Positions 3 through 6,027 of a DNA stretch of 6,027 nucleotides are shown here, piece by piece. A program made the position numbers and the translations under genes. Source of the stretch: Perkinsela sp. CCAP 1560/9 (lineage: Eukaryota > Protista > Euglenozoa: Kinetoplastea); the NCBI GenBank assembly GCA_965644495.1, contig CBFFSA010000101.1, positions 1 through 6,027 on the forward strand, given 5' to 3'. Position 1 is the stretch's first letter. Each line of letters starts with the position of its first letter. The notes below the pieces were generated by a model, which was given only the letters and a program-made list of their open reading frames with translations, searched no databases and was not told the origin of the DNA.

Positions 3-2624
3 AGCGCAAAGTTCATCCCATCTGTTGTGGCCATATATCGCGACATAATCTGTACGTACAGCAGCAGTGATCATAACCATAATAGAACTTGGAACTATCA
101 TAATAGAACTTGGAACCGCGTACTTTCTGCCATGAAGCTTTCCCTGGCAACAGTTCATAAAGCCAACATGAAACAATGCAAGCGCCGACCATTTCACTTG
201 AAAAGCGAACAACAGGAAACGACGGGAGACACAAGAGCTGTAAAACGAGCTCAGCGCTTAGTTCTAGAAGGGAATGCCACCAAAGCTGCGAAAGTTTTGG
301 ATCAATCCTTTCTACCAAGCACGCTCCGTGACGAGGAAACGCTGGAAAAGCTCAAAAAACTACACCCGGATTTCCCAACTGACATGACTCTGCCAAAGGA
401 TGCACCGATCATTGCCGGAATCACGCCCGACGAATTGAGAAGTGCTGCAAGACGATTGGCGAAAGGTGCGAGCCCAGGGCCAACAGGAACAACTGACGCC
501 ATCGTGCGACTGCTAGTGGATGATGAGATATGCGGCACAAATCTATGTCACATGATGGGTGATTTACTGAACGGTTTCTTATCGACAGAAGTTATGCGGC
601 GATTAAACCGTGCGCGACTGGTTGCGATCCCGAAAGCGAATGGTAGCGTGCGACCAGTTGCTATGGGCGAGGTCCTAACCAAGTTGGCTGGTATGATTCT
701 ACTTCAGCGATATGAAAACACTCTTGAGCCATTATTCTCCCCAATTCAACAGGGTGTGATGTCAAAAGCAAGGTGCGAACGCGTAGTTCATAAGTTAAGC
801 AGGCTTCATCTTGAGGGCCATTCTATTTTGTCGGTGGATATTAAAAACGCATTCAATTCACCGGACAGAAGGGACATTGCTCGTCACGTGTTTGCTTTTG
901 CTACACTCCGTCCTTTTCAGCGGTTTTTCTTTTTTGAATATTCCCAAGCTTCGGAGCTGTTGTACTTTGGATCTGAAGGTAGGTTCGTTGAGGCGATACC
1001 CAGCACTGCGGGGTTAAGACAAGGATCTCCTTTGGCTACTCTCTACTTTTGCGCCTACCTACAACCCATACTCGAAAGAATAGCGCATGAGTTTCCAGAG
1101 GTCACGGTCAACGCATTCATTGATGATATTACCCTCGCTTCTAAAAATCCAGAAATGCTTGCAAACGCATTTACAAGCCTGAGAGAACTATTGACGGAGA
1201 AACGTTTAGAATTATCAACCGAGAAATGCGTCTGGTTCGGTGGAATCTACAAGAAGACCATTCCGCAGACACTTAGAAAGGAAGGAGTGCAAACAGAAGA
1301 TGACGCAACTAAGATTTTAGGAGCCTTCATAGGGGATACTGACAACGTAGACAAATGCCTAGTTCATACACTCGAAGGGCATGACAATATTTTTCGTCGT
1401 CTAAAAACAATGGGAATGTCCAATGTTTCGCTCAGCTTACTAACAAAATGCGTCAACGTGCGACAGCAATATCAAATGAGAGTACATCACCCTGACGCCA
1501 CCGAGCGCGTATCTGAGAGATTTGATAAGAACGTTGAGGCAGTGTTGGAATCGTGGTTGGGCAAGCTTCGGACACAACAAATTGAGCTTGCTAGATTACC
1601 CCTTAAGAAAGGTGGTTTGGGGCTCACCGCGTGCAAACCCACGCGGGAAGCTGCTTACAAATCGTCTCGATATGCGGTCTTTGGGCGCCAAAAGCCTTCT
1701 ACAGCTCAAAGTGGCATATCAGGGCAAATGCAAGTCAGCAACGAGCAACAAATTCCACCGGAAGACGAGATCACGACAGCTGCAAAACTACACGAAAAAG
1801 CTTGGCAAAAACTAAATCAGGGTCCTCACATGAATTCGATTCTTAAAAACACGTCCAGGAAAGGTAGTTACGACTGGATTACAGCTGCGACACGATACGT
1901 ATCACCACATGTCTTCTCTTTATCCGTAATGCCTCGGCTTGGAATCTCACATCCGAAAATCCCACAGAATTTATTGTGTCCCGGGTGCCGGAAAATACTG
2001 GACGGACGAAGCGCCCTGATACATATCCCAGGCTGTGTGCAATGCCCAGGCTTTAACGCGACATCGAAACATAACGCCCTCGTAAAGTATATCTATGATC
2101 TATGCATCAAAACGGGGATCCCCTGTGAAAGAGAGCCACGACATTTCAGCACATGGACATGCCTCACATGCAAACGAACCGTTGACCAAGATAATCATCA
2201 ATTGCACCATAAAACATGCAGTGGCAAAAATTATCACCGCTCAGGACCAGATATCGTCATATACTGGAATACGGGAGCTGTTTTCTACGACTTAACCGTG
2301 ATTCACGAATTGGCAGCCACACACGCGAAGAGCCATCCAGGACAACTGATGAAAGAAGCGACTGAACGTAAAATAGAAACGTATGTCCGATCAGGTATGA
2401 TATCCGAAGAGTCGTTTCTTTGCCTACCGGTGCTCTCCTCTGGGTCACTCCACGCGAACACGTTAAACCTGATTCACGAACTTGCAGATGCGTCGCTTAC
2501 GGACAGGAACAATGCCATCTTATCATTTAAACTATTGCTACAAGAGCTAAATGAGTCACAAATTTATGCTCAACTGCGAAAGTTCTTAGCAGTAGATACG
2601 GAAGCGTCTCAAAAGGCAATTTAA
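3..2624 (+). CDS. Retrotransposon polyprotein: reverse transcriptase + zinc knuckle + restriction-like endonuclease (5'-partial)
   Basis: The frame is open from base 3 (SAKFIPSVVAIYRD...), so the GTG at 27 is not a real start. RT motifs: RPVAMGE (651), VDIKNAFN (~834), GLRQGSPL (1011), FIDD (1116-1127), LSTEKC, KILGAFIG. Thumb: RLPLKKGGLG (1593-1622). Knuckle: C-x2-C-x11-H-x3-C (1977-2036). RLE: KHNALV helix, GPD (2244-2252), FYDLTV, RKIETY. Stop is TAA at 2622-2624. Confidence 0.95.
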   Translation, partial: SAKFIPSVVAIYRDIICTYSSSDHNHNRTWNYHNRTWNRVLSAMKLSLATVHKANMKQCKRRPFHLKSEQQETTGDTRAVKRAQRLVLEGNATKAAKVLDQSFLPSTLRDEETLEKLKKLHPDFPTDMTLPKDAPIIAGITPDELRSAARRLAKGASPGPTGTTDAIVRLLVDDEICGTNLCHMMGDLLNGFLSTEVMRRLNRARLVAIPKANGSVRPVAMGEVLTKLAGMILLQRYENTLEPLFSPIQQGVMSKARCERVVHKLSRLHLEGHSILSVDIKNAFNSPDRRDIARHVFAFATLRPFQRFFFFEYSQASELLYFGSEGRFVEAIPSTAGLRQGSPLATLYFCAYLQPILERIAHEFPEVTVNAFIDDITLASKNPEMLANAFTSLRELLTEKRLELSTEKCVWFGGIYKKTIPQTLRKEGVQTEDDATKILGAFIGDTDNVDKCLVHTLEGHDNIFRRLKTMGMSNVSLSLLTKCVNVRQQYQMRVHHPDATERVSERFDKNVEAVLESWLGKLRTQQIELARLPLKKGGLGLTACKPTREAAYKSSRYAVFGRQKPSTAQSGISGQMQVSNEQQIPPEDEITTAAKLHEKAWQKLNQGPHMNSILKNTSRKGSYDWITAATRYVSPHVFSLSVMPRLGISHPKIPQNLLCPGCRKILDGRSALIHIPGCVQCPGFNATSKHNALVKYIYDLCIKTGIPCEREPRHFSTWTCLTCKRTVDQDNHQLHHKTCSGKNYHRSGPDIVIYWNTGAVFYDLTVIHELAATHAKSHPGQLMKEATERKIETYVRSGMISEESFLCLPVLSSGSLHANTLNLIHELADASLTDRNNAILSFKLLLQELNESQIYAQLRKFLAVDTEASQKAI
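78..116 (+). repeat. In-frame tandem duplication (period 21 nt) inside the ORF
   Basis: CATAATAGAACTTGGAAC occurs at 78-95 and 99-116, encoding HNRTWN-Y-HNRTWN. Confidence 0.9.
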
Positions 2625-2707
2625 TACTATGAACATACGATGAGATATTTCTTATATCAATACTACACAGATTTAGATATAGAGCTTACAAAGACGCGTA
2701 AACTCTT

Positions 2708-2820
2708 AGTTTTTTTACCTCCCCATCATAATGGGGGGTAGCGCCAGAACAGAAAACTTTTTAATCTAAGGTGTGAAGATGTTCAAGGGAAAATATTAAC
2801 CCCTTAACTGATTATATCAG
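2708..2820 (+). other. Structured 3' UTR of the retrotransposon (three consecutive stem-loops)
   Basis: TACC(T)CCCCAT-cata-ATGGGGGGTA at 2716-2740, enclosed by AGTTTT/AAAACT. GTT(C)AAGGG...CCCTTAAC at 2781-2808. CTGAT-tat-ATCAG at 2808-2820, directly against the tail. Confidence 0.6.
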
Positions 2821-2840
2821 TGTTGTTGTTGTTGTTGTTG
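2821..2840 (+). repeat. (GTT)n microsatellite, probable 3' tail or target of the element
   Basis: TGTTGTTGTTGTTGTTGTTG immediately follows the 3' UTR hairpins. Confidence 0.85.
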
Positions 2841-2966
2841 AACTATGTTTGTGCAAAAAAAAAGACAACGGGAAGAGGCTAACACGGCTGGGTACAAGTT
2901 CGCGGCAATGGTAGTAAAAAAAAAATATCAAGAAACTATCATAATACCGAATATTGAATTTCAATA

Positions 2967-3890
2967 TTATAATTCAAAAAAAAAAAGAAAAAAAAATATG
3001 GAACAGATTCTGATTTTGCTTGTCTGCGGAAGGTAAAGGAATCCACTTGAACCTTCGCTGCCTTGGGCTGGTGCATATGAAATCTTGATTTTTATTAGTC
3101 CTTTGCGAGATGTTCTGCCTACGACGACTCCCTTCGATACGTAGTTTGTCGTTTCCTGACGGAATCCCCATTCGATTATGCAAGATGTGCCTTTACCCCA
3201 CTTTGCTACGACATTGTGCACATGATCCGGTGCTTTGGAAACGGCGCCCCGATTTGCAAGCTCTTCGATGGCCCCACAATCGCTGTAAAGGGACATCTCG
3301 TCACTTTAATCTTCAGAGAGTTGCTCATCATTTTCGATATCGCGCTGGATCAGTCTTGAGTCTTGAGTCGTTTCGATATCCGACGTTTTTGTTTGTTGTG
3401 GGTCGCAGGCTGATTGGGCGTTTGAAGGCGTGAATCGAAAAGTTTTAGGCTTGATTTTAATGATATTGTCGGAATGCTCGCCGTGTTGTTCGCCATGGCC
3501 AGCCCAATCTTTTGGCAGTGCTACAGATCCTTCTTCGGAGTTCTGGTTTCCCTGGAGGTAATTGGCCTGGTCAGTCCCGTGGTCTGCCCAAATCTTTGAA
3601 AGAAGAGGTTCTCCTCCGACGATTCTGATGCGTGGCGTTTTCTTCGGTTTGGTCGGTGGGGGGGTAGATGCTTTTATTCGAGGTATGCGCGTCTTTGTCG
3701 TGGTGGGGGGAATAGTCTCATCAAAAGTGTCACCCGAAACGTCATTGACTATGCACTTTTTCTCACTGTTCTCTTGGCCCCTCTTGTCTTGCATTCGTGA
3801 TTTCACTTTTAGTCTACCTGTTTTCAGGCCCAAGCCTTTCGATGTCTGAGAGTCTGCTCGAGCAAGGCGTGCGTGGGCAAGGCGTGTCAT
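2967..3890 (-). pseudogene. Interrupted ORF of unknown function (MTRLAHARLARADSQ...), possibly the N-terminal/ORF1 region of an SL-associated retroelement
   Basis: The track ORFs 3306..3932 and 2967..3296 are in the same frame, separated by one TAA at 3306-3308 within an acidic run (EQLSED*SDEMSL). The ATG at 3890 follows an SL fragment. A K/P/T-rich disordered region precedes a beta-rich segment (CIIEW...KGVVVG...IKISY...FLYLP) that runs into a T tract near 2996. Confidence 0.55.
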
Positions 3891-3913
3891 AGCGATTAAA
3901 TCAAAAAAAAAAA

Positions 3914-3928
3914 AACAAGGTACAGAAA
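3914..3928 (-). other. Spliced-leader exon 3' fragment (SL relic)
   Basis: The minus strand reads TTTCTGTACCTTGTT, an exact 15-nt match to the SL-like copies at 4325-4368. It continues as a T run, then GATTTAATCGCT and the ATG at 3890. Confidence 0.7.
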
Positions 3929-4177
3929 GCACCCATCACCGAAGAAACAAGCTACAACCACTCGAAAGTGTGTGCTGGTAGACAGACTCATCGCAATGGG
4001 CCTGATTTGGTTATCCATTGGCAAAGCGGAGAAATCTACTACGATCTGACCGTCATTCATGAGCTAGCGCCGTCGCGAATTCAACAAAAATGTGGACGCC
4101 TCATTAATGAAGCCATTAAACGGAAGCAAGCAACGTACGTCGCATCCGGATTGATTCCCGCATTATCTTTTCAGTGT
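3926..4177 (+). pseudogene. Internal fragment of the RLE endonuclease from a second, related retrotransposon family (truncated at both ends)
   Basis: KAPITEETSYNHSKVCAGRQTHRNGPDLVIHW...YYDLTVIHELA...RKQATYVASGLI...SFQC aligns without gaps to the main ORF (32/60 identical from GPD to SFxC, hand count). Similarity stops abruptly after the Cys codon ending at 4177. Confidence 0.9.
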
Positions 4178-4292
4178 CGCCTTTCACCAGGTCTTTGTTT
4201 GCCTGAAACTGGTCCCATGAACCGAGCTTGTGCGCGCCCGCTTCGCGATCAAAGTTGGATTCCTGTTTTGCTTTAGAGCGAGTTAGAACCAT
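4178..4292 (-). pseudogene. Truncated 5' fragment of an ORF downstream of the SL (MVLTRSKAKQESNFDREAGAHKLGSWDQFQANKDLVKG)
   Basis: The ATG at 4292 follows the SL pair and a 32-nt pyrimidine-rich 5' UTR. After about 38 codons it runs into the antisense of the RLE fragment. It is absent from the supplied ORF track. Confidence 0.5.
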
Positions 4293-4324
4293 GGAACGTG
4301 AGAAAGATTAAGAAAAGAATTGCT

Positions 4325-4378
4325 CAACAAGGTACAGAAACTGTATCAACAAGGTACAGAAACTGTAGCTTTATCGTT
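4325..4378 (-). other. Euglenozoan spliced-leader (mini-exon)-like sequence with an exact 22-bp tandem duplication; exon only, no SL intron
   Basis: The minus strand reads AACGATAAAG-CTACAGTTTCTGTACCTTGTTG-ATACAGTTTCTGTACCTTGTTG. It has the CAGTTTCTGTAC core and TTG end conserved in kinetoplastid/diplonemid SL exons (consensus recalled from memory). No GT donor follows either TTG. On the plus strand TCAACAAGGTACAGAAACTGTA occurs at 4324-4345 and 4346-4367. Confidence 0.8.
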
Positions 4379-4388
4379 AACGCCGCTG

Positions 4389-4620
4389 TTTTTTTCTTTT
4401 TTTTTCTTCGTTGCCTTCGCCCACCCCTCGCCACCCCCTTGGTCGCCCTCTGTTGCCCCCTGCATCGCTCTGCCGCGCCGCTTTTCGCCCCCCCACCCAC
4501 TGCGCCGTCCCCTTCGCCGCCTATTCCCCCTCCCTCCCTGCTCCCACCTGCGCCACTCTTTCCCTTCCCACTCTTTCCCTTCATCCCCTCTGCTACCCCC
4601 TCACGCTGCATCTCGAAGAA
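4389..4620. repeat. Low-complexity C-rich (+) / G-rich (-) tract bounded by a T-rich tract
   Basis: Many C3-C6 runs occur between about 4420 and 4600, and the T/C tract spans 4389-4408. Confidence 0.75.
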
Positions 4621-4643
4621 TGGCGCCGCCCGGTACCGAATAT

Positions 4644-4682
4644 AACAAGGTACTAAAAAACTAGGGTAGGCGTCATTCACGC
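4644..4682 (-). other. Degenerate copy of the SL-like unit
   Basis: The minus strand reads GCGTGAATGA-CGC-CTAC-CCT-AGTTTTTTA-GTACCTTGTT, versus GCGTTAACGA-TAAAG-CTAC-AGTTTCT-GTACCTTGTT at 4383-4348. Both are preceded by an A-rich tract. Confidence 0.5.
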
Positions 4683-4881: not shown

Positions 4882-5143
4882 AGTCGACACTCCCAAACTA
4901 TGCCAGCAAGCAGGCAAGGGGTCAAGGAGCACTGCTTTTTTCCAGTGTCGGGGTGTGGCGAACCCCACTCTCCTAGCTAATCCAGCTTCCCGCAGCGGAC
5001 TTTCAGTCTGCGCGTTAGCTGGATCGGCTTGCATTGGCTCTGTGCTGCAATCCTTTTAGGTCTGCGCATGGGTCGTGCGGGTCGGAGCTACCTTCGGCTC
5101 TCTCCGAGGAGGCAACACCCCGTCTACGGGGTTTTTACCTGAA

Positions 5144-5163
5144 AAACAAACAAACAAACAAAC
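5144..5163. repeat. (AAAC)5 / (GTTT)5 microsatellite
   Basis: AAACAAACAAACAAACAAAC lies at the boundary between the RNase H-like ORF and the structured non-coding segment. Confidence 0.9.
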
Positions 5164-5164
5164 A

Positions 5165-5481
5165 TTTGCCGTCTCAAGTATACATTGCGCCTTATCACCA
5201 ATTTTCTTTAATAGATCCGCATTTTCGAGTGTTGTATAACCATCTAGTTGAAAACTGATGCGATGTCGATGCCAAAACTGCCATACGTGCTCGGAGTCTA
5301 CATGCACCACGAAGTCTCCTTCTTGTTGATGTCCGATTGTCAAGGCTTGTAGAAAAGCACGTAGTTCTGCTCGTATGGGGGTTCGATCTTGTTTTGAGAG
5401 TTCTTGTTGCTCTATAAATGTACATCTTATATAGTGGGAAAAGGTCTGGAACCAGAATATTTTCGATGTATAGATGATCAT
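5165..5481 (-). pseudogene. Ribonuclease HI-like domain, partial or degenerate
   Basis: RTPIRAELRAFLQAL matches helix A (TNxRAELxAxxxAL), FVVHVDSEHV matches the xxxTDSxYV strand, and DGYTTLENADLLKKI matches the basic protrusion/helix D (GW...KNxDLW). The core spans about 5385-5200. The first catalytic Asp (DG) and the C-terminal H...NxxAD motif are not visible. Confidence 0.7.
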
Positions 5482-5613
5482 GGGGGCCGAGTTTACTATA
5501 GAAGGGGGGTCGGCCTTTACATGTAAACTAGCTTTAATAGCAGAACAAACATGCATTTTCCTGTCTGATTAAAAACGAGAGGGAGATCATCTCTTTTGGT
5601 CCACTGTCTGAAC

Positions 5614-6027
5614 TTATATGGTGTATTGTTCTTCCTTGTCGGGAGTTAAATATTTTTGCATCTGCAACAGAACTATGTTCCCGTTCAGTTCTTGGAGGTA
5701 CAGGGCAAAGTCTTCTAATATATGTTGCCGTGAAATAAGGCAACGATCTGCTAAAGCTGTTAATAGACGTTTTGTATGCTTATGTAGCGCTCCACCCGAA
5801 AGGACAGGGATACACATGAAACGATCATTCGCAATCATCCCAGAAGTTACGTAACGGTCGCGTTTCTTCGTGATGACTTCGTTCATCATTTTTTGAGGCG
5901 TTTTGTTTATGTGAGCTGCTGAAAACTCGTGAACTACAGTTAGGTCATAATACATCGGACCGTCTGCCCAGTAGATCATAAGGTCGGGCCCAGATCTGCG
6001 GACACTGCCGCGACAGCTGCGCTGGTG
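5614..6027 (-). CDS. C-terminal RLE endonuclease of a third related non-LTR retrotransposon family (5'-partial, runs off the window)
   Basis: The frame is open from 6027: HQRSCRGSVRRSGPDLMIYW...YYDLTVVHE...KKRDRYVTSGMI...FMCIPVLSGGALH...LQELNG...KYL. It is colinear with the main ORF's C-terminus (28/60 identical from GPD to FxC, hand count). Stop is TAA at 5616-5614. Confidence 0.92.
   Translation of the reverse strand, partial: HQRSCRGSVRRSGPDLMIYWADGPMYYDLTVVHEFSAAHINKTPQKMMNEVITKKRDRYVTSGMIANDRFMCIPVLSGGALHKHTKRLLTALADRCLISRQHILEDFALYLQELNGNIVLLQMQKYLTPDKEEQYTI

Follow-up and report, generated by a model that had tools for sequence, protein, structure and literature searches.

A doubled, intron-less spliced-leader sequence at the head of a retroelement fragment in Perkinsela sp.

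The stretch of DNA investigated in this study (the window, 6,027 nucleotides from Perkinsela sp. CCAP 1560/9) carries on its minus strand what we identify from its sequence as a DNA copy of a spliced-leader (SL) exon of the kinetoplastid or diplonemid type, extended by a repeat of its 3'-terminal 22 nucleotides. The site is the head of a retroelement fragment and not an SL RNA gene. We tentatively ascribe the repeat to a duplication of the kind known from R2 elements, formed at an integration junction or by a template switch, a reading that we find plausible although it falls somewhat short of probable. What we infer here is threefold: the RNA-borne origin of the leader, the order of events and the mechanism acting at the junction.

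Intron-less copies of an SL in DNA provide a natural tag of RNA-mediated copying, which in the literature searched has been described for dinoflagellates and not for Euglenozoa. In the present case, the tags appear to be shared by an entire community of R2-like retroelements, whose host has an SL variant that had not been recorded before. They suggest that these elements move as RNAs bearing the leader and accumulate head-to-tail, each behind the poly(A) tail of another. The leader would constitute a hot spot for junction errors, as tandem repeats of its segments, here termed stutters, recur across the sampled loci. Among these, the doubling in the window offers the cleanest case in which to ask if a relic leader may function once more as a splice acceptor, and an integration scar appears to be the more likely answer.

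The doubled leader and its gene

The features of the window that are relevant to the argument are listed below by their position, strand and nature, with RT denoting reverse transcriptase and RLE a restriction-like endonuclease.

27..2997, plus strand: element A, with an open reading frame (ORF) of 865 residues (27-2624) that contains RVT_1 and a C-terminal CCHC and PD..D..K endonuclease region
3003..3902, minus strand: 5' part of element D, with a 5'UTR, an ATG at 3890 and an ORF starting MTRLAH..., 78% identical to locus L007 at 3241-3634
3903..3928, minus strand: 5'-truncated SL relic heading D (TTTCTGTACCTTG), beginning at exon nt 23 directly behind the second AG, together with T13
3929..4177, plus strand: internal fragment of an RLE domain, about 250 nt, inverted with respect to the SL-led heads
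4178..4292, minus strand: first 38 codons of the ORF of element E (MVLTRSKAKQESNFDREAGAHKLGSWDQF...), an LsmAD-like retroelement, 99% identical to locus L012 from 3452
4293..4324, minus strand: 5'UTR of fragment E, 32 nt, pyrimidine-rich
4325..4346, minus strand: SL relic copy 2, covering exon nt 17-38 (22 nt) with no deviation from the consensus
4347..4380, minus strand: SL relic copy 1, covering nt 5-38 (34 nt) of the 38-nt exon as defined by the gene on contig L016
4381..4412, minus strand: A-rich tail of module F with an 8-nt spacer (CAGCGGCG) that touches copy 1
4413..4679, minus strand: module F, SINE-like, non-coding and highly repeated, with an SL-like head AGTACCTTGTTATATTCGGTACC at about 4643-4660
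5614..5979, minus strand: C-terminal RLE region of element B, located upstream in the chain read along the minus strand

Read along the minus strand, the A-rich tail and the spacer CAGCGGCG are followed by copy 1, copy 2, AGCAATTCTTTTCTTAATCTTTCTCACGTTCC and an ATG at 4292..4290. Copy 1 (TTAACGATAAAGCTACAGTTTCTGTACCTTGTTG, 4380..4347) is without the first four exon nucleotides, ends exactly at the splice-donor position and shows a single deviation from the consensus, a C at 4368 in place of an A (AAAGCTACAG in copy 1 versus AAAGATACAG in the genome consensus and copy 2). Copy 2 (ATACAGTTTCTGTACCTTGTTG, 4346..4325) begins immediately behind the site of the first AG in the exon (AAAG), as had been stated in the original prediction. 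A repeat search of the window describes the arrangement as an exact tandem of 2 x 22 nt at 4324-4367, with a unit of TACAG...TTGA in that register, and the 20-mer ACAGTTTCTGTACCTTGTTG, which is common to both copies, matches the window twice with no mismatches while giving no match in 200 shuffles. The bases 3' of the two copies are AT and AG, and GT follows neither of them. In the public run X1, which possibly represents the source sample of the window, one contig of 145 nt covers positions 4292-4436 with zero differences and zero gaps, the doubling thus being present in DNA reads and not the result of an assembly slip. A search of Rfam found nothing that reached the gathering score, whether in the window or in L001-L007, with matches at chance level only near the site.

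The window sequence, the repeat search and the X1 contig therefore agree with the original prediction of an intron-less leader and a 22-nt second copy, followed by a 5'UTR and an ATG and devoid of a GT donor. The predicted borders (4325-4383) hold for the doubling, but their last three bases (4381-4383) are not part of the SL, and copy 1 starts two nucleotides (TT) further 5' than in the sequence given by the original prediction. The 5'UTR and ATG proved to be real, since the 32 nt lead into 38 codons of a retroelement ORF, which is broken off at about 4178.

This ORF spans 58 residues in the window, of which the first 42 are identical to the start of P0025, a protein of 787 residues with an LsmAD match on record. 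Its relatives P0022, P0023 and P0027 carry RVT_1 and E is thus the 5' end of a retroelement. The minus-strand ORF that opens with this ATG represents the true N-terminus of a retroelement and is not antisense to anything, and the plus-strand ORF at 3968-4276 is real only up to 4178, where the homology of E to L012 ends. The full-length copy in L012 consists of A19 TC, a full SL, GTTGATTTA and TTTTCTTAATC, with one SL and not two. Its identity to the window is 99% from TTTTCTTAATC to 4178, and the first 8 nt of the 5'UTR read AGCAATTC in the window versus GTTGATTTA in this sister copy. A third junction variant, with 3 nt missing at 4320-4322, is found in contigs of the runs X1 and X2, and X1 contigs suggest further copies of E with a TTG|AGCAATTC junction, the depth at 4320 amounting to 466 versus 65.8 for the tandem contig, which is the only contig spanning the doubling and the one of lowest depth in X1. 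Since the sister copy of 99% identity contains one SL and the spanning contig is the shallowest, the doubling looks specific to the window copy of E.

The N-terminus of E belongs to an LsmAD-like family (HK.GSWDQF..N..L..STY.E.LYTTP) with members in the window (4178-4292, minus), L012 (3452-5815), L006 (20035-21603, minus) and L007 (14661-15419, minus). It seems that an RNA-binding module of the ataxin-2 type was recruited as the N-terminus of a retrotransposon.

The conserved core CAGTTTCTGTAC and the TTG at the 3' end reflect the identity of the leader, and an AAC start is seen in L016 and in the relics that are preceded by poly(A). All 14 published euglenozoan SL consensus types contain ACAGTTTCTGTAC (TCAG in one of them), start with AAC and end with TTG (PMC3795323), in support of the assignment to a kinetoplastid or diplonemid type in the original prediction. 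Their common ending is CT(T/A)TATTG, none of them closing with CCTTGTTG, the 3' end found here, and the Diplonema type displays AACGAT..AAAGCTACAG in its 5' half, with the consensus AACCAACGATTTAAAAGCTACAG (PMC3795323). Searched as 19-mer or 15-mer, the 3' end had no match in the literature either, and its unfamiliarity, which the original prediction had pointed out, extends to the published types and to the literature searched.

A scan of metagenome contigs with the 19-mer identified L016, an environmental contig whose species may differ from that of the window, in which the exon AACTTTAACGATAAAGATACAGTTTCTGTACCTTGTTG is followed by GTATGAGAAGCTTCG. We take the latter to be the start of an SL intron of the trypanosomatid kind. 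The exon comprises 38 nt, is identical to the relic consensus and leads into a GTATGAGAAGC donor. The contig (JGI metagenome contig Ga0316204_10168667, positions 1-1785) represents a unit of about 1.8 kb containing the SL RNA gene and a 5S rRNA gene at 450-568 on the opposite strand (98 bits); ARAGORN found no tRNA in L016. The two ends share an overlap of 7 nt, and the contig probably corresponds to a single repeat of a tandem array. In the RNA fold predicted after joining the ends via this overlap, a stem across the donor precedes UUCAUUGGAAAG in single-stranded form, a terminal hairpin of 14 bp and a UUAUUU tract, where the Sm-like site is assigned by eye only and the 3' part depends on the joining of the contig ends. 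L016 indicates that this exact exon belongs to a true SL RNA gene, and the main refuting condition of the original prediction did not apply. The copy followed by GT, which the original prediction had expected of such a gene, is found there with donor, hairpin and T tract, and not at the window locus. Six other matches of the 19-mer in contigs from metagenomes and genomes (L013-L015 and L017-L019) were discarded as chance, with the rest of the exon missing and at least two of them (L018 and L019) residing in bacterial MAGs.

In the public runs, which are stored as contigs and of which none is registered as RNA, the SL bin is 100-170x deeper than its neighbours. In run X5, whose origin from RNA is a guess and which consists of contigs and not of raw reads, the SL continues at TTG into at least three distinct sequences, at depths from 17 to 1448. 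Another contig, of high abundance in each of the four runs and with a depth of 1180 in X5, reads ...GGCATGTACACGG|TAACGATAAAG...TTG|ATTTTTTCATCTTAC and has loose ends at 4379 and 4345; it represents no L016-type gene and corresponds to none of the fetched loci.

The retroelement nest and its leader relics

Along the minus strand, the window is composed of a chain of element B, module F with its A-rich tail, the SL with its 22-nt repeat and 145 nt of E, the inverted RLE piece, the truncated SL with about 900 nt of D, and the poly(A) end of the oppositely oriented element A. In the latter, the C-terminus of the protein harbours two CCHC knuckles and the PD..D..K motif, and the 3'UTR contains (GTT)6 and poly(A) at 2975-2997. 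A structural model of the last 265 residues has a pLDDT of 84 and its best seven PDB matches are all R2 proteins (E 2e-6 to 5e-4); the window elements are thus predicted to encode an R2-like RT combined with an RLE. The closest database relatives of the window RT protein all originate from the same assembly as the window, and no named CRE or SLACS sequence was among the matches. The D-family ORF in L007 carries RVT_1 and this copy is headed by a full SL at 3222-3256, and the original view of a retroposed setting is supported by a window copy that is intron-less and placed among RT/RLE retrotransposons.

Several further observations concern the neighbourhood of the site. Contigs of the public runs break at both ends of the inverted RLE fragment (3929-4177), which is 100% identical to another genomic copy with a different continuation (X1 record 4); twin priming was considered for this fragment and rejected, as the inverted sequence would have to be on the other side of the direct one and is not derived from E. 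Module F (4386-4679 with its tail) combines a diverged SL-like head with a G/A-rich body and is also present in L007 at 2661-2752, 2803-2849 and 16936-16990, the depth of its head being about 20x that of its neighbours. Downstream of the RLE ORF of element B, an ORF of 166 residues (5056-5556, minus) gives a weak match to RNase H (E 0.045), and a gene of 166 residues with PF00075 on record is located at L003 16714-17214, where it ends in an SL relic. The poly(A) of A meets the body of D at ATCAGAATCTGTTCC (2975-3015), 12 of 15 positions matching the SL core, and this junction may be an off-target insertion at an antisense look-alike of the SL. Minisatellite arrays of 17-19 nt (e.g. AAAGAACACCTTTTTTAT) are found at L007 17194-17521 and L002 6440-6619 and in L004, L005, L008 and L010.

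A census of leader relics covered the window and 12 loci of the same assembly (about 222-228 kb), which were fetched via relatives of the RT and LsmAD proteins and are biased towards retroelement-rich DNA. This sample contains 17 complete intron-less SL copies, 16 of them outside the window. All but one of the 17 end exactly at the splice donor and then diverge, the next two bases being AA, AT, TC, TA, CT, TT or GT, and SL intron sequence (GTATGAGAAGC...) was found behind no SL copy in about 228 kb. Every complete copy heads a retroelement unit, in which a UTR of 15-54 nt is followed by an ATG, and 8 of the 17 are located directly behind the poly(A) tail of another element. The exon is constant from C3 onward, with positions 1-2 being variable when no poly(A) precedes, and at L005 9468 and L002 9847 partial 5' pieces of the SL lie ahead of full SLs. 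The exact end at the donor, the variable cap-proximal end and the natural 5'UTR behind the leader argue for its arrival on RNA. The relic leaders most likely stem from trans-spliced transcripts, a duplication of a cleaved SL gene at the level of DNA being less likely. That all SL heads would be target-site copies of a cleaved SL gene was rejected in view of the exact donor ends, the variation of exon bases 1-2 and the fact that no chain ends in the intron.

Relics that are truncated at their 5' end start after one of the two AGs of the exon in 4-6 of about 16 cases, which is commoner than expected by chance (P ~0.01 or less), and most of those starting at exon nt 23 have no SL upstream. Starts exactly at nt 23 (TTTCTG..., after ACAG) with unrelated DNA upstream are found in the window (3903-3928, minus), at L008 ~15976 (minus) and at L004 8245-8261 (plus), and could reflect a second nick site of the endonuclease, a stop of the RT or the 5' end of an RNA. 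A mosaic at L002 13357-13500, consisting of poly(A), a C, 66 nt of a D-family ORF from its ATG, a 13-nt 3' piece of the SL and the 5'UTR and ATG of another family, looks like the product of serial template switching.

Origin of the 22-nt repeat

Exact short tandem duplications (7-40 nt, satellites excluded) occur 51 times in 214 kb, several of them in the window. Eight of the 51 are located at SL 3' ends, where 0.25-0.56 would be expected, an enrichment of over tenfold that derives from five or six independent sites (P 3e-4 to 7e-6 for five independent events, the counts being small). The stutters are distributed as follows.

10 nt: L004 22229, L006 7507 and an array at L004 7409-7456
8 nt: L008 2656
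7 nt: L005 14618
4 nt: L012
22 nt: window 4325-4380, minus strand

Each stutter at an SL 3' end has one register that ends at the last exon base. Two more duplications are found at the SL 5' end; at L005 9468-9513, a 23-nt tandem comprises 5 nt of non-SL flank and SL nt 1-18.

In the reading that we tentatively favour, an E RNA carrying the leader of the organism would have been copied into DNA inside a head-to-tail nest of R2-like elements, with the extra 22 nt made at integration and not by splicing. A cDNA containing only the last 22 leader nucleotides would have been attached immediately after the 3' end of a different full-length SL. The latter might have been a relic residing at the target, or the RT might have reached it by jumping to a second template with an SL. 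Among RLE elements, R2 has been investigated most thoroughly. For R2 RNA with upstream target sequence, the 5' junctions are mostly uniform with a minority showing tandem upstream duplications of 13-26 bp (PMC3774820), and non-templated bases and microhomologies are common at R2 junctions (PMC2718515). The geometry of the window, with a full SL, its 3'-terminal 22 nt and then the element, is of this kind, and the stutters of 4-10 nt are built alike. It counts against this reading that a jump onto the exact last SL base would require a cleaved target or a free exon as acceptor, and that the start of copy 2 after AAAG would be a coincidence, for which the chance per event is about 2 in 37. The excess of truncated relics starting after an AG likewise counts against it. 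Neither an empty target site nor a second E junction is visible, because E is cut off after 145 nt. The idea that copy 1 might be the missing upstream half of the SL of D, set apart by a 15/16-nt target duplication, is weakened by an X2 contig that joins the same truncated head of D to different DNA (3929 to 4488).

The start after AAAG would find a direct explanation if an earlier copy of E with a single relic had been transcribed within a longer precursor, trans-spliced at the AG of the relic (AAAG|ATACAG), reverse-transcribed and inserted, an origin by recycling that we regard as possible but rather unlikely. Since a retro-copy is without the original acceptor, its re-expression depends on another AG, of which the relic offers two; in the diverged tandem at L004 8227-8261 the second copy starts after the other AG, and the truncated relics described above show the same preference in 4-6 of about 16 cases. 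The copies of E with a TTG|AGCAATTC junction suggested by the X1 contigs are possible sources, and tandem relict SLs are established in dinoflagellates (PMC6050394). The remaining stutters speak against this origin, as five of about seven independent ones in about 228 kb start at non-AG positions (after CTG, GTA, TAC and CTT), leaving the window copy and the diverged pair in L004 as the only starts after AG, and at least one AG start among seven would be obtained by chance with P = 0.32. Recycling also needs an SL upstream, which most relics starting at nt 23 are without, and no pyrimidine tract precedes AAAG. Such a tract ahead of the acceptor AG is a requirement of trypanosomatid trans-splicing, which may not be that of this organism. 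Finally, it is the upstream copy 1 that bears the sole substitution and the shortened 5' end while the downstream copy conforms to the consensus, a weak argument as it concerns one substitution. The two rounds of SL addition proposed in the original prediction thus retain the AG start of copy 2 in their favour, and have against them the start of most other stutters, the single SL of L012 and the deviation in the upstream copy.

Recycling might be part of a wider loop resembling the one in dinoflagellates, in which SL-capped element RNAs of this euglenozoan are reverse-transcribed, land next to earlier relics and are re-spliced at their AGs. We consider such a loop unlikely, by a shade more than the single event at this locus; if it existed, one round of transposition after another would have left its trace in the tandem relics and in those truncated at an AG.

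A local duplication of 22 bp after insertion, caused by replication slippage or by fill-in of staggered nicks of an SL endonuclease in the absence of an insertion, is distinctly unlikely in our view. It would account for the exact 2 x 22 nt (TACAG...TTGA) with no need for a later mutation if the C variant came first, and short exact tandem duplications are common in this DNA. The duplication at L005 9468-9513 includes non-SL flank, so splicing cannot produce that one, and repeated nicking by SL-targeting enzymes would result in an enrichment at SLs. However, there is no flanking microhomology in the present sequence, which makes plain slippage unlikely for a 22-nt unit, and the common boundary at the exact SL 3' end is unexplained unless a nick site is located there. 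To our knowledge, insertion-free fill-in duplications by RLE enzymes have not been documented.

Very improbable, and refuted for this locus, is a disrupted SL RNA gene whose repeat is the target-site duplication of a classical CRE1, SLACS or CZAR insertion into the exon. The neighbouring RT and RLE elements are of the broad kind that includes the CRE clade and SL sequence is present at element boundaries. Yet no element lies between the two copies, no SL intron follows any copy in about 228 kb, the copies head 5'UTRs that lead into ORFs, and the duplication affects the exon's 3' end, not the surroundings of nt 11/12. None of the 17 relics is a CRE-type insertion inside the exon of an SL RNA gene, all of them heading elements and being without the SL intron. 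The original alternative of a 22-bp duplication by an SL-targeting element of the CRE1/SLACS type consequently had to be given up, with neither insert nor intron nearby and an R2-related junction mechanism providing the better fit.

An artefact in form of cDNA contamination, a chimera of an SL-primed library or an assembly error is hardly credible, for even though tandem SLs can arise in SL-primed cDNA libraries, and the end of an X5 contig with an inverted SL pair looks like such a product, the window is part of an assembly of long-read style that is full of interrupted, inverted and decayed elements, its flanks are mosaics unlike transcripts and the X1 contig reproduces 4292-4436 exactly.

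Whether the doubling is a junction scar or a re-used acceptor, either answer would inform on the formation of 5' junctions by site-specific retrotransposons, which is of practical interest for R2-based gene insertion.

Comparison with known systems

With the CRE clade (CRE1 and CRE2, SLACS, CZAR and NeSL-1 of nematodes), the window elements share their nature as non-LTR retrotransposons, an endonuclease C-terminal to the RT, the association with SLs and poly(A) tails; the RT with a C-terminal CCHC motif and a restriction-like endonuclease of the PD-(D/E)XK type is found in the window. In contrast to the window elements, which carry a complete exon at their own 5' end and outside of any SL gene, members of the CRE clade interrupt SL RNA genes. 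SLACS and CRE elements insert at a fixed exon position, nt 11/12, and are flanked by target duplications of 29-49 bp.

With the SLs of kinetoplastids and diplonemids, the exon shares the core ACAGTTTCTGTAC, the TTG end and the AAC start, its 5' half resembling the Diplonema type AACCAACGATTTAAAAGCTACAG. The likeness extends to the SL RNA gene, as L016 shares the GTATGAGAAGC donor region, the hairpin and T tract and the linkage to 5S. It differs in length, the known SLs comprising 39 nt and the L016 exon 38 nt, and in its 3' end CCTTGTTG, and the copy in the window is an intron-less relic and no gene.

The DinoSL relics in retrogenes of dinoflagellates (Slamovits and Keeling 2008; review in PMC6050394) have in common with the present case an intron-less SL in DNA at the 5' end of retroposed units and an occasional tandem of an SL and a truncated relic, and the truncation here also falls after an internal AG. 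Dinoflagellates belong to a different phylum with a different SL, and the tagged units are cellular genes there and retrotransposons here. Their 5' copies are cleaner, whereas the 5' copy in the window deviates from the consensus, a weak distinction that is due to one substitution. Unlike in dinoflagellates, most stutters found here do not start after an AG and the relics are strongly associated with the poly(A) tails of their neighbours.

A close parallel to the junction is offered by R2 (and R1), which share with the window elements the R2-like RT with its CCHC motif and RLE and the tandem upstream duplications, spanning 13-26 bp in R2 compared to 22 nt here. In R2 and R1, these duplications are variable and confined to a minority of copies, and non-templated bases are found at the junctions (PMC3774820, PMC2718515). 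The repeated sequence in R2 is 28S rDNA, which is carried on the RNA by co-transcription and ribozyme cleavage, whereas in the window it would be the SL, probably acquired via trans-splicing.
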